From the sequence record PQ464590.1: a stretch of DNA of 64,000 nt. One strand, 5' to 3'. The first letter of the stretch is position 1, and every line of letters starts with the position of its first letter. Position numbers and translations under genes: made by a program. The notes under the pieces are model-generated. The model did not search any database, was not told the DNA's origin, and was given only the letters and a program-made list of their open reading frames with translations. Below, piece by piece: positions 14,106 to 58,465 of this stretch.

Positions 14106-14118
14106 TATTTCTCACGTT

Positions 14119-52572: not shown

Positions 52573-52663
<91 letters not shown>

Positions 52664-52717: not shown

Positions 52718-53158
52718 TTATTTCACTAGTTCGTACTTTTCACCGAGTTTCACTGCTTCGCGAACAAATTCAATGAAATCGTAAGTAATACCACGAAGAT
52801 CAGTGACTAGTGATTCTTGGAAAAATGCGTCCTCACCAACAGTACTGTCCAGTGTAACTACTGCACCGTCTTTATCACCGTCCGCTGCTAGGGTGATAAC
52901 AATCTGTGCTGCGTCTACATCGTAGTTCACGATGGCGTTTTCAGTAGTTACCATTGCATAACCAGGTACTTTAGAATCTTTGCGGTACGCACCACGAAGA
53001 ATCATTAGTGAGTTGATTACTTTGACACTGTTCACATCATCATATAGGACGTGGAACATGTAATCATTCTCCTGAAAGTTTTCTTCAGTGACATCGATAG
53101 TACGGCCTGGATTCTGGAAGAAATCAGTTTGTAGTAGGTCGTGAATTAGTTCTTTCAT
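52718..53158 (-). CDS. EEExFQxST-module family protein
   Basis: VGEDAFFQESLVTDL. Confidence 0.8.
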   Translation of the reverse strand: MKELIHDLLQTDFFQNPGRTIDVTEENFQENDYMFHVLYDDVNSVKVINSLMILRGAYRKDSKVPGYAMVTTENAIVNYDVDAAQIVITLAADGDKDGAVVTLDSTVGEDAFFQESLVTDLRGITYDFIEFVREAVKLGEKYELVK

Positions 53159-53337
53159 TTCGTGTTCCTTGTGTATTCTTTCATTTTACGATTCGCAAAG
53201 AATCGTGTTAAATCATCGCTTCTTGTATCTAACGTGAAAGTACCGTAATAGGTACTCCCACATTGATCACAGAAAGTTCTGGACTGATAATCGTATTCAC
53301 GATTACATTCAGTGCAGTATTTCTTGGTTTGCATCAT
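53155..53337 (-). CDS. small Zn-ribbon protein
   Basis: CTEC-x11-CDQC. Confidence 0.7.
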   Translation of the reverse strand: MMQTKKYCTECNREYDYQSRTFCDQCGSTYYGTFTLDTRSDDLTRFFANRKMKEYTRNTK

Positions 53338-56024: not shown

Positions 56025-56250
56025 GTTTAGCCCTTATTCGTTTGTATATGTTGAATAGTGTTGTTTCGATCAACACATCATGTTCGTTATAATAAAATGC
56101 ATTACAAGTAGTACATGTATGAAAGGGGAATGGTTGCAATGTTAAACCAATAGGATAATCCCCTATCATATGATGGAATTCAGTACTGCCACAATGAAGA
56201 CATGGTTCTAATTCAACATATACACGCTTGTCAAAAGTGTACTTGTGCAT
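56014..56250 (-). CDS. Zn-ribbon array member
   Basis: CLHC...HTCTTC; LFNIYKRI. Confidence 0.7.
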   Translation of the reverse strand: MHKYTFDKRVYVELEPCLHCGSTEFHHMIGDYPIGLTLQPFPFHTCTTCNAFYYNEHDVLIETTLFNIYKRIRAKHEM

Positions 56251-57175
56251 CAGGTGAAGCCTTATATAGCTCTTTTGCCATATCAATGATTTCATCACGC
56301 ATGTGGATTTTATTTACCCATTCTTCAGGAATGCCATCTAAGCCGTAATAAGCACCTGCGATTTGACCCGTAACGGCAGCTACTGTGTCTGCATCGTCGC
56401 CTAGGTTCGCAGCTAACAGTACTGCCTCCTTGAAGGAATGAGTCATTTGGAAGCACCACAATGCAGCTTCAAGCGTATCAACACAGTAACCAGTACTCTT
56501 GATATCATCACGCTTCTTAGTAAGGTAAGAACCTTCTAGAACTTTTTTGATATCAGGATCGGTAATCCCATACATGCTAACAGGATATGCATGGAAGTCA
56601 AGACATGTTTGCTTGTCTTCAAGATGGAATAAACGGTTCAAAATAACACCTAAGCCAACACATGCATCAGTCGCAGTAGTGTACGCGTGGGTAGTTTCTG
56701 AACTTTTACGAAGATTATAGAGTAGTGTAGTGTACTCTTCACTAAACGCTTCTTCAGTACTACCAAAGATAGCAACTGGAGCTAAACGCATAATGGAGCC
56801 ATTACCACAACTCAAGAAATCATCGTTATGTACAACAGTACCGTATTTGATGAACTCACGAATAGCGGTAGCAGTACTAACGCCAATGTCAAAACACTGA
56901 CCATTACTACTCATGTATCCATTTTGATACCATTCAACATAGTTCCGAAGTTGATCCTGTACGTTGAAACCTTCACTGATGAGGGATTCAGCTAAGCACA
57001 GTGCCATGCTGGTATCGTCAGTCCATTCACCTGGATTCAGATTGAACGCACCACCACCAACCATATCGGTCAGTACTGGGTACGTGTCACGATCTTTAAA
57101 TTCCAGTGTAGTGCCAATAGCATCACCTACCGCAAGACCAACTAATGCACCAATTGCTTTATTTTGAATACTCAT
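56231..57175 (-). CDS. ADP-ribosylglycohydrolase (DraG/ARH family)
   Basis: GLAVGDAIG...GEWTDDTSMAL...GNGSIMRLAP...LGDDADTVAAVTGQIAGA. Confidence 0.95.
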   Translation of the reverse strand: MSIQNKAIGALVGLAVGDAIGTTLEFKDRDTYPVLTDMVGGGAFNLNPGEWTDDTSMALCLAESLISEGFNVQDQLRNYVEWYQNGYMSSNGQCFDIGVSTATAIREFIKYGTVVHNDDFLSCGNGSIMRLAPVAIFGSTEEAFSEEYTTLLYNLRKSSETTHAYTTATDACVGLGVILNRLFHLEDKQTCLDFHAYPVSMYGITDPDIKKVLEGSYLTKKRDDIKSTGYCVDTLEAALWCFQMTHSFKEAVLLAANLGDDADTVAAVTGQIAGAYYGLDGIPEEWVNKIHMRDEIIDMAKELYKASPDAQVHF

Positions 57176-57417
57176 TTGAACTTCCCTCTGTATTGTTGAA
57201 ATGTTTTACGATACACAGAACCAACGAAATGCGATTCTTCGGATTGCATCAGACCACCTAGACATTTTCCAGAACATTGGTGACGAAGTAGGAAAAATCG
57301 AATACTTCTTGGATCTGATTGGAACATCTTCATTGCAGTTAATCTAGCTTTGGGAACTAGAACGAAATTACATATTGGACACTTCATTACTTCCATTCGC
57401 CAATCTCCGATTGTCAA
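57172..57417 (-). CDS. Zn-ribbon array member
   Basis: MKCPIC...HQCSGKC; TFQQYRGKF. Confidence 0.65.
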   Translation of the reverse strand: MTIGDWRMEVMKCPICNFVLVPKARLTAMKMFQSDPRSIRFFLLRHQCSGKCLGGLMQSEESHFVGSVYRKTFQQYRGKFK

Positions 57418-57621
57418 AGAATTTTCATTTCTTATGAACTACCGTTCAACGAAATTCAATTCACTTAATATTGTCAGTACTGAAATACTGACGAGGTTTG
57501 ATGAGGACATTTTCATCCCCCACTGGGGGATAGATATTAAAAAAGTACTTTTACAGTACTTGATTATGTCTGACGCTGGTAGCATCGGAACTTTTCGAAT
57601 TGTGAATTTCCCTGAATTTTA

Positions 57622-57957
57622 GATACAACTTACCCGTACTAAAATGGTCAGGAAACGAAAGCGGGTTGCTCTGTTTCTCTCTATCACAGTCTCATGCAAC
57701 GGTCGGGGTCTTAGCCCACTTCATGTACAGTCTATTCGAACAAACGTACATGCGGCTCATACGAGCCTCCCTTAGCAATCTGGTGTAGTGACCTACAGTT
57801 TACCTATCTAGGGAACAAATCTGCCTGAGTGTTCCTTTATAGTGCCGTAAACGCCGCGTACGGGTATCTCTGCACTCGCATGTACCGCCATGCTCATCCT
57901 TCCTCTACTTTTCGATTCAGGGTTGTCTAATCTCATTGAGATCGGTATTGTATCGTA
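57622..57957 (-). ncRNA. candidate ~335 nt structured non-coding RNA
   Basis: Starts just below a class-2 promoter; 5'/3' closing stem GATACAAT/GTTGTATC; many internal hairpins; no ORF. Confidence 0.6.
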
Positions 57958-57962
57958 CCTTG

Positions 57963-57994
57963 TATTATATCACATTTTTCAGGGATATCCCAAA
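57963..57994 (-). promoter_or_regulatory. class-2 phage promoter
   Basis: TTTGGGATATCCCTGAAAAATGTGATATAATA. Confidence 0.8.
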
Positions 57995-58465
57995 TTATTG
58001 CAACGCATCACGAATTAGGTTCAATGTATCAGCGAACCAATCATGACGCTGCTCAAGTTGCACTACTTTACCATGATACACGTAGTAGTGAACAATTGGT
58101 AAAGTACATTCCTTGAGAGCAGTCTTCAGATCATCGTTCTGGACAATCTTTGCTACCATTGCATCTTGTAGTATTTCAAGATCTTCCTCTGTTAAGGAAG
58201 TCACTACTCTGTGAAACTTCTGTCCAACGGATTTGGCAGTACTGCCATGTAATGAACGTAGCTCTTCATGTTTTTTACCAGTGACGTACCAGTAATAAAA
58301 AGCTTCCATACTGTTGAACTTACCATATGGTTCAAAGACGAATGGGGAGTATGCAAAATTAGATAGCATTCTCCCTAAGTGTGTCCGTCCCTTACTATAC
58401 GCGTTGAGGTGCGTATACCCGTCTTCAGAAGGATCATAGTATTGATCTTCTTCGAACTCAAACAT
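57995..58465 (-). CDS. NADAR-like protein (second paralog)
   Basis: LGRMLSNFAYSPF...FNSMEAFYYW...AKSVG; similar to 21082-21522. Confidence 0.6.
   Translation of the reverse strand: MFEFEEDQYYDPSEDGYTHLNAYSKGRTHLGRMLSNFAYSPFVFEPYGKFNSMEAFYYWYVTGKKHEELRSLHGSTAKSVGQKFHRVVTSLTEEDLEILQDAMVAKIVQNDDLKTALKECTLPIVHYYVYHGKVVQLEQRHDWFADTLNLIRDALQ

Follow-up and report, generated by a model that had tools for sequence, protein, structure and literature searches.

A probable new family of large, multiply pseudoknotted noncoding RNAs carried by jumbo phages and bacterial chromosomes

We analyzed a stretch of 64,000 nucleotides (nt) of record PQ464590.1 (here, the window), which comes from the 366-kb genome of the Erwinia jumbo phage Hallingskeid, around a locus for which an earlier note had proposed a novel large multidomain noncoding RNA (ncRNA) under its own promoter, ca. 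335 nt long and located at positions 57622 to 57957. Hallingskeid is a "group 2.2" jumbo phage, with EJP2, 121Q/PBECO4, GAP32, CBB, BF, and RaK2 as relatives (PMC11780129). All the motifs quoted in that note are the reverse complement of the plus strand, and the candidate RNA therefore lies on the minus strand, as do the flanking open reading frames (ORFs) and all seven transfer RNA (tRNA) genes of the window. Every feature below is on this strand and, unless another record is named, in window coordinates. Only one copy of the RNA is found within the 64 kb. The GC content is 0.44 to 0.47 within the element versus 0.36 to 0.38 in its flanks, in keeping with what had been claimed, and the claim that no ORF is present also holds, as those in the element reach 43 amino acids (aa) at most and, when the longest ORFs of 27 homologues were compared, none was kept in strand, frame, or position. 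GenBank has three "hypothetical protein" coding sequences (CDSs) over the RNA, CDS0312 to CDS0314 (42 to 62 aa; positions 57434 to 57936), and small CDSs with the same label are also annotated over a second Hallingskeid paralog (PQ464590.1, 52720 to 53331); both sets are very likely spurious calls on ncRNA genes. In all relatives, a gene-free gap of 570 to 910 nt, mostly without annotation, is found at the same position.

A consensus scan placed a promoter at 57964 to 57993, consisting of a -35 box TTGGGA (57993 to 57988), an 18-nt spacer, and a TG-extended -10 box TGTGATATAAT (57974 to 57964). It is a 10/12 match of the sigma70 type (TTGGGA-18-TG-n-TATAAT), plus the TG extension, and ends ca. 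7 nt upstream of 57957, where the earlier note had put it; TGnTATAAT was found in nearly all of the 30 aligned members of the family described below. Judged from these signals, transcription would start at about 57958 to 57956, and the 5' end of the core RNA reads GAUACAA. The ca. 40-nt promoter (TTTGGGAT-N9-AAAWATGTGATATAAT) is shared by several sites on the minus strand of the window (ca. 57995, 52702, 40770, 30576, and 14106) and also precedes two genes for tRNA-Ser and two for proteins. Apparently, it is the standard strong host-type promoter of the phage, with nothing special to the RNA. The idea that these repeats mark further ncRNA genes was rejected, as those at 14106 and 30576 serve protein genes.

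At the other end, there is an intrinsic terminator (57539 to 57561; AAGUACU-GUAAA-AGUACUU followed by a U6 tract), which the consensus scan missed because its stem has only two G-C pairs. Across the family, the stem covaries (GUACU/AGUAC, GAUCC/GGGUC, GAGAC/GUCUC, and GUACAC/GUGUAC) upstream of a fixed U6-7 tract, and the hairpin is missing in EJP2, RaK2, another member (L112), and two Serratia copies. From the predicted start to the end of the U tract, the core RNA gene spans 57539 to 57957 (nhmmer envelope, 57958 to 57539). The RNA is ca. 420 nt long rather than ca. 335 nt: the 3' boundary originally given was wrong, because conservation and covarying helices extend ca. 85 nt further. Position 57622 is the end of the 3' strand of helix P1, inside the loop of helix K, and from there the RNA runs on by way of K, the 3' strands of M and PK2, and hairpin L to the terminator.

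By blastn, the element was detected at this position in 69 to 70 jumbo-phage records. A promoter-free core query matched one to four places per genome (four in Hallingskeid, three in 121Q, two in BF, and one in RaK2); two of the four Hallingskeid places were verified as full-length copies, the second paralog lying outside the window at about 52843 to 53305 of the record. We then scanned IMG/VR, metagenomes, and GTDB genomes for patterns and filtered the matches with a profile hidden Markov model, which raised the set to 56 unique near-full-length members (38 clusters at 90% identity). They come from jumbo phages of the Rak2/121Q/GAP32 type, from metagenomes, and from five bacterial chromosomes. 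One metagenomic phage of 366 kb carries four copies.

Thirty of the sequences formed the alignment used for covariation (A1), with the pair counts of each helix made by script. A scan of all column pairs, free of structural assumptions, recovered the local hairpins together with the long-range helices, and RNAalifold on A1 returned 66 pairs, 45 of which had compensatory double changes. Altogether, ca. 17 helices are supported, most of them through compensatory change, and there are three long-range pairings (PK1, PK2, and M). When the 3' partner was slid by 1 or 2 columns, pairing fell to 59 to 76% in the short purine-rich helix N and to 0 to 66% in the others. For the fully canonical PK2, M, N, and hairpin c, the range after sliding was 7 to 76%. 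Along the same lines, six stringent helices were observed, versus none or one in ten column-shuffled alignments. G-U cells outnumbered A-C cells (240 versus 50), which indicates selection on the RNA of the minus strand. Single-sequence folding was modestly above shuffles (z = -2.1 for 57622 to 57957 and z = -2.7 for 57537 to 57957), and the strength of the case for a structured RNA comes from the comparative data rather than from folding of this kind. Over the 56 sequences, 91 alignment columns were at least 97% conserved, most of them unpaired and located in junctions and loops.

Helix P1 is formed by GAUACAAU (57947 to 57954) and GUUGUAUC (57622 to 57629). It corresponds to the closing helix GATACAAT/GTTGTATC of the earlier note (57954 to 57947 with 57629 to 57622), which is kept in relatives, but since its 3' strand lies inside the loop of helix K, the pairing is a pseudoknot. 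P1 reaches 87% canonical pairing across the 19 members carrying the module, with 2 compensatory positions, and its 3' segment is missing in one paralog group, where helix K is a plain hairpin. The additional closing pair TACC/GGTA finds no support, as UACCG (57943 to 57947) pairs instead with CGGUA (57887 to 57883) in the loop of hairpin c, forming PK1, which covaries at 7 of 8 positions (variants CUGAUUGA/UCAAUCAG, ACAACGG/CCGUUGU, and UCAGUGG/CCACUGA). A long-range helix GCA..GCGGT/ACCGT-TGC lacks support as well: ACCGUUGC is invariant, while its proposed partner varies freely.

The local hairpins fared better. GGAAC/GTTCC, TGTAG/CTACA, GGCTC/GAGCC, and CATGTAC/GTACATG are all real, and these four show compensatory changes across the family. 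Also real is ATCTC/GAGAT, i.e., hairpin a (AUCUC-AAU-GAGAU; 57930 to 57942), which varies in length and has positional equivalents in all relatives. Hairpin b (57898 to 57921) has a conserved loop GAAAAGUA (57913 to 57906) and a stem in which 4 of 5 pairs are compensatory (CCCUU/AAGGG, CUAUC/GAUGG, and CCCUC/GAGGG), the string GAGGAA being part of its 3' side. An invariant AUGAG is followed by hairpin c (together 57878 to 57897), where GCAUG (57893 to 57889) pairs with CAUGC (57882 to 57878) around the 3' strand of PK1; this stem is 100% canonical, with two compensatory pairs. Helix d (GUGC/GCAC, 57875 to 57872 with 57845 to 57842; whole feature, 57842 to 57875) encloses purine-rich junctions and helix e (57862 to 57859 with 57849 to 57846), inside which relatives have an additional variable hairpin. 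Helix d is 99% canonical and covaries in 3 of 5 pairs (AGUGC/GCACU, UGAGC/GCUCA, and ACAGC/GCUGU). Next come hairpin f (GGAACA/UGUUCC, 57812 to 57835; loop motif UARRCA; 6/6 pairs compensatory) and hairpin g (UGUAG-GUCA-CUACA, 57784 to 57797; 3/4). A near-invariant segment, GCUAAGGGAG (57776 to 57767), of which UAAGGGA is invariant in the 30 sequences, precedes hairpin h (GGCUC-GUAU-GAGCC, 57767 to 57754; segment and hairpin together, 57754 to 57776), with variants GACGU/ACGUC and GCCA/UGGC and a large insertion in some paralogs.

The 3' half is held together by the other long-range pairings. Hairpin i (57722 to 57752), with 12 of 13 stem pairs compensatory, presents in its loop UUCGAAU (57740 to 57734), the 5' strand of PK2, which pairs with AUUCGAA (57594 to 57600). 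PK2 was 100% canonical throughout the 30 aligned members; compensatory change affects 5 of its 7 pairs, and there are six different complementary variants, including UUGUAU/AUACAA, UCGCAU/AUGCGA, UCAUAU/AUAUGA, UUCAUG/CAUGAA, and CUUGAAU/AUUCAAG. A reading of UUCGAAU as a T-loop was rejected on conservation and covariation. Hairpin j (57719 to 57705; 4/5 pairs compensatory) has directly 3' of it the invariant GACCGUUGCA (57704 to 57695; both together, 57695 to 57719), of which GACCGUUGC is invariant in the 30 sequences. Helix M joins UGUGA (57684 to 57688) to UCACA (57601 to 57605), abutting the 3' strand of PK2, and is again 100% canonical in all 30 (UGCGA/UCGCA, AGUGA/UCACU, CGUGA/UCACG, and CGUAA/UUACG). 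The same figure was obtained for hairpin N (57657 to 57681), in which GAGAG (57681 to 57677) pairs with CUUUC (57661 to 57657) following the pattern GNGAG/CUUNC (GGGAG/CUUCC, GCGAG/CUUGC, and GGACG/CGUUC); its 15-nt loop AAACAGAGCAACCCG (57676 to 57662) is near-invariant, and the 3' half of the loop, GCAACCCG, is invariant. Helix K (57607 to 57655) combines UUUCCUGA/UCAGGGAAA with AUUUUAG/CUAAAAU, carries the 3' strand of P1 in its loop, and is compensatory in all four scored pairs. Hairpin L (GAUGC-UACCA-GCGUC, 57572 to 57586; loop consensus CYAYCAK) is 90% canonical, with one-sided changes only (U-G to C-G).

The majority of the conserved columns belong to invariant unpaired segments, namely, AUGAG, the GAAAAYGUA loop, UAAGGGA, GACCGUUGC, and the AAACAGAGCAACCCG loop. 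The window copy has the complete family-defining set: helices b to g, i, j, M, N, K, and L; PK1 and PK2; the invariant blocks AUGAG, UAAGGGA, GACCGUUGC, and GCAACCCGC; and the promoter-to-terminator unit. A module made of a helix plus the loop UACAAnnnAG occupies the K loop of some paralogs, and others have it within hairpin h (A1 columns ca. 360 to 415 and ca. 555 to 585; 121Q, L069, L112, and XaC1, among others), and some members have both. Its placement suggests module shuffling within the family.

Beyond the terminator, there is a conserved structured block of ca. 135 nt (57400 to 57531), with a hairpin AUCCCCC-AGU-GGGGGAU (57531 to 57515), a conserved single strand ending in CGUCAG (57493 to 57488), a helix GAAUU/AAUUC, and a distal hairpin CAAUC-GGA-GAUUG (57413 to 57401) with all five pairs compensatory. 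All paralogs have retained the block, as have those Serratia copies that were examined, and it is noncoding, since 1-nt indels break any reading frame. The members that lack the U-tailed hairpin, listed above, continue directly into it, and the block is therefore probably a read-through extension of the RNA. The hexamer CGUCAG occurs twice, at 57575 to 57570 (just 3' of hairpin L) and at 57493 to 57488, ca. 80 nt apart, and both copies change in step (CGUCAG, CGUCAA, CUUCAA, and CGACAA), with agreement in each of the 50 members that could be anchored cleanly. Either copy might pair with the 5' strand of hairpin L, or the two might have a recognition site in common. The first hairpin of the block (UCCCCC-AGU-GGGGGAU plus GAAAAU, 57515 to 57531) vaguely resembles type I-E clustered regularly interspaced short palindromic repeats (CRISPR), a likeness that we do not claim; with Rfam, this posttermination hairpin gave only nonsignificant hits (E of ca. 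1 to 3), which were to different CRISPR repeat families and lay on the other strand.

The candidate had been put forward as a phage RNA, and this has to be corrected. Full-length copies are present in four bacterial assemblies (L120 to L123), including the complete chromosome of Serratia fonticola (L123, CP183218), all of them at the edge of integrated elements. The Silvania and Serratia sp. copies lie immediately downstream of a large serine recombinase, while the S. fonticola copy adjoins two ParB-like genes plus a serine recombinase, abutting tilS. The Silvania copy and that of an Enterobacteriaceae metagenome-assembled genome are convergent with a CI-type helix-turn-helix S24 repressor, the latter copy being located after thiD-thiM. 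Among 5,426 complete Escherichia coli genomes, 2 carry the RNA, which the Prokaryotic Genome Annotation Pipeline leaves without annotation, as it does the other chromosomal copies; one of the two E. coli copies (L164, AP027515, ca. 3479114 to 3479517) sits within an island of ca. 10 kb beside ffs. A plasmid search found no copy. Thus, the family is rare in enterobacterial chromosomes but not restricted to phages.

We found no flanking protein family common to these contexts in an all-versus-all BLASTP of the ORFs within 4 kb of 35 copies; synteny was local only, and none was in common with the bacterial contexts. With Pfam, the neighbors had unrelated functions, also among the phage paralogs, and in the neighborhoods examined, no defense gene was consistently linked to the RNA. 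In the window, an ADP-ribosylglycohydrolase gene (56231 to 57175) is located downstream of the RNA cassette on the same strand. The same arrangement is seen in EJP2, 7t3, Kae01, BF, and XbC2, among others, and the neighbors differ at other paralogs, which do not show this pattern. Among the tRNA genes of the window, ARAGORN called a tRNA-Ser with the anticodon ACT (52573 to 52663). An unmodified A34 is unusual among bacterial-type tRNAs.

In order to relate the RNA to known families, 4,227 Rfam families were compared at the gathering score, at an E value of ≤10 on positions 57300 to 58100, and at an E value of ≤5 on seven relatives that include the largest and most divergent. None matched within the RNA at any of these cutoffs, and there was noise outside it only. 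This includes ROOL and GOLLD (which we take to be RF03087 and RF01998), OLE, HEARO, raiA, and other large ncRNAs. ARAGORN found no transfer-messenger RNA in the window, only the seven tRNAs, and Rfam gave no match to one. A hammerhead-like arrangement was also considered (CAGAUGAG...CGA, as (C/U)AGAUGAG, hairpin c, and CGA) and rejected, given that the equivalent of U4 is A and the position of A14 varies among A, U, C, and G; neither the RNA nor its relatives had an Rfam match to hammerheads. Our literature searches on phage RNase P RNA, Asteriusvirus ncRNA, large phage ncRNA, and prophage structured RNA retrieved no relevant description, and the element goes unmentioned in the paper describing Hallingskeid and in the main jumbo-phage comparative study. 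In this respect, the novelty put forward in the earlier note is upheld by Rfam, ARAGORN, and the literature alike, and we rate the RNA as a new family without demonstrable relation to any known one.

Taken together, we have little doubt that the locus is a genuine structured ncRNA gene and consider it probable that this gene stands alone and represents a new family of large ncRNAs with multiple pseudoknots. Several points weigh against this reading or its parts. Covariation was assessed by simple counting, against shuffled and slid controls and not by R-scape, and relatedness inflates counts of this kind. The MAFFT alignments are sequence based, and the window sequence is out of register in three places, PK1, hairpin g, and hairpin h. 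P1 is backed by its 2 compensatory positions only and is absent from some paralogs. For the invariant segments, no partners can be assigned, given that they never change. The start, the end, and the read-through of the transcript are all inferred from the sequence. Lastly, nothing was found that links the RNA to a defense or counterdefense system.

In the model that we favor, host RNA polymerase would transcribe the RNA from about 57957, most transcripts would stop at about 57539, and read-through would append the structured block of ca. 135 nt. The 3' strands of M and PK2 form a continuous stretch of 12 nt (57605 to 57594) and, being contiguous, can stack coaxially. Such stacking would gather hairpin i, the GACCGUUGCA junction, hairpin N, and helix K, and the resulting compact fold would juxtapose the invariant segments GACCGUUGCA, the AAACAGAGCAACCCG loop, UAAGGGAG, and AUGAG. 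GUUGC (57700 to 57696) and GCAAC in the loop of hairpin N (57668 to 57664) are complementary and could form an additional pseudoknot; both are invariant, so that covariation is uninformative here. RNAs that are large, highly conserved, and pseudoknotted and also keep many unpaired nucleotides invariant are rare; in the past, they have proved to be ribozymes, ribonucleoprotein (RNP) cores, or, more recently, RNA-only assemblies. Given an architecture like that of ribozymes or RNP cores, we lean towards a trans-acting RNA with a discrete functional center, in which the invariant cluster would act as a binding or catalytic center and not as a cis regulator of its neighbors. The cassette would travel as promoter plus RNA, in the manner of a moron, beside immunity and integration genes in temperate elements and in multiple copies in lytic jumbo phages. 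Its carriage in both temperate islands and lytic jumbo phages makes a role in conflicts among mobile elements, hosts, and rivals the most likely one, although the support is weak and we propose such a role only tentatively. A further, rather speculative step would make the family a new catalytic or self-assembling RNA class, an autonomous cassette of Enterobacterales mobile elements whose ca. 90 invariant nucleotides would be an active site (for instance, for RNA cleavage, ligation, or modification) or interfaces for nanoassembly, with up to four specialized paralogs in jumbo phages.

Of the alternatives, two seem to us unlikely to a similar degree. The first is that the RNA, in the manner of ROOL and GOLLD, is a homo-oligomer made of RNA only, so that certain long-range pairings (the 5' strand with the K loop, and loop i with the 3' strand) would join separate molecules. 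ROOL and GOLLD are described in PMC12286853 as forming homo-oligomers; they are, like the Hallingskeid RNA, large, ornate, and conserved phage or prophage RNAs, without a linked partner protein gene or known function, and by analogy our RNA may likewise be an RNA-only assembly. Covariation is blind to the difference between intra- and intermolecular pairing, and the UUCGAA of PK2 is palindromic in the window, whereas nonpalindromic PK2 variants are common in the family. Moreover, the resemblance is one of kind and not of homology: there is no sequence or covariance model (CM) similarity, the Hallingskeid RNA is smaller (ca. 420 to 560 nt) and has a different helix topology, and the hosts differ, with phages of Enterobacterales and Xanthomonas here as opposed to Bacillota and others. 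ROOL and GOLLD are its nearest analogues.

The second is that the RNA is a counterdefense decoy or mimic, captured from islands by jumbo phages in order to neutralize a host system that recognizes it. Homologues in chromosomal islands, prophage-like elements, and lytic jumbo phages (up to four copies), as well as the constitutive host-type promoter, would fit this scenario. The lack of a consistently linked defense gene does not, and ca. 90 invariant nucleotides across very different elements exceed what a decoy usually needs.

Less probable still is a cis-acting leader (riboswitch or attenuator) governing read-through into a 74-aa ORF and the ADP-ribosylglycohydrolase gene. The operon containing the latter does lie downstream on the same strand in the window and in several relatives, more conserved RNA follows the U-tailed hairpin, and the covarying CGUCAG pair could give the 5' strand of hairpin L alternative partners. 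However, downstream of the paralogs and bacterial copies there are unrelated or convergent genes or a further terminator, the terminator stem varies freely without any matching change in an upstream antiterminator, and an RNA of 420 nt with three long-range pairings is far above known leaders in size.

Returning to the new-family reading, two classical large RNAs to which the earlier note had seen echoes can be set aside with high confidence. A highly diverged phage RNase P RNA, processing the many tRNAs of the phage, might be suggested by the tRNA genes nearby (at least seven in the window, transcribed from the same promoter type), by comparable size and pseudoknotted complexity, with long-range helices and invariant junction nucleotides in both, and by short strings like the conserved regions CR-II, CR-IV, and CR-V (AGUGCAGAGA, AUGACUGUG, and ACAGAGCAACCCGCUUU). 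Nevertheless, neither the RNA nor the seven relatives matched the bacterial models RNaseP_bact_a and RNaseP_bact_b (presumably RF00010 and RF00011) or the archaeal, nuclear, and type T models. Each of the strings has a different explanation in the family: GAGGAA forms one side of the hairpin b stem and is not conserved; GGUAAAC, compared with J12/13-J13/14, occurs in the window and EJP2 only, with GACAUAU in other members; GACUGUGA has its partner on the 3' side, in helix M, and not in a 5' P2 strand; and ACAGAGCAACCCGCUUU, like the quoted ACAGA..ACCCGCTT, is the loop plus 3' stem of hairpin N. A P4 helix between CR-I (GAGGAAAGUCC...) and CR-V (ACAGAA.CCGGCUUA) does not form, given that the CUUUC of the CR-V-like string pairs locally with GAGAG 15 nt upstream (helix N). 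A permuted P4 of AAGUGGG with CCCGCUU was rejected for the same reason, and because GUGGG is the 5' strand of hairpin j. The GUGCAGA-type string invoked for a CR-II/CR-III specificity domain is the 5' strand of helix d plus junction. Without a conserved CR-I and with an element order unlike the P1-to-P18 topology, the RNA is not a member of this family, and the possibility is very remote.

We assign the same very low probability to a group I or group II intron, or a remnant of one. An intron might be suggested by the size, structure, and pseudoknots of this phage RNA, by the HNH and endonuclease VII genes found near some paralogs, and by the string GAGCCGCAUG, which recalls domain 5 (D5) of group II introns. 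Yet this string runs from the 3' strand of hairpin h into the 5' strand of hairpin i, each covarying independently, and the RNA interrupts no gene, comes with a promoter and a terminator of its own, lacks exon-like flanks (the flanks differ among paralogs), and gave no match to the Rfam intron models. As for group II hallmarks, we did not find a 34-nt D5 with AGC triad and 2-nt bulge, a domain 6 with its bulged A, or GUGYG, as the RNA starts with GAUACAA. Group I features (P1/P10 exon pairing and a P3-to-P7 core) were absent too, the element being free-standing, with a different helix order and no CM match to Intron_gpI. The earlier note was therefore right that neither core can be completed, and comparative analysis shows the echoes to be coincidental. 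Finally, the idea that the region encodes the three annotated proteins of 42 to 62 aa, or is a DNA-level element, is practically negligible, because the longest ORFs of homologues disagree, indels are not multiples of three, and the substitutions preserve pairs with the G-U over A-C excess, a strand-specific signature at the RNA level.

Two other large RNAs help to put the family into perspective. OLE is alike in its large intricate fold, strong conservation, and many invariant unpaired nucleotides, but it is encoded in the chromosomes of Bacillota extremophiles, has partner proteins dedicated to it, and localizes to the membrane, whereas the Hallingskeid RNA has no linked partner genes; Rfam scans detected no similarity between them. 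Pseudomonas phage PA5oct, a related jumbo phage from the wider Rak2-related clade, offers a precedent for an abundant large ncRNA, since its ncRNA002 is an ORF-free "putative lncRNA" of 451 nt that makes up 1 to 5% of the phage RNA-seq reads (PMC7318152). This RNA (L119, MK797984, 21951 to 22401) showed no similarity to the family profile with nhmmer at maximum sensitivity, and the invariant motifs of the family are all absent from it. It is probably an analogue, not a homologue, and may be an independent large phage ncRNA.

The family is well defined, with 56 unique members, ca. 17 supported helices, and clear transcription signals, and it corrects the annotation of dozens of jumbo-phage genomes, in which the locus is blank or lies under spurious small ORFs. 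As it occurs in culturable phages of E. coli, Salmonella, Klebsiella, Erwinia, and Serratia, it is directly testable. That lytic jumbo phages and chromosomal islands have it in common suggests that mobile elements exchange an RNA-based trait, and the function of this RNA, once known, could expose a new RNA activity in the conflict between phages and their hosts.

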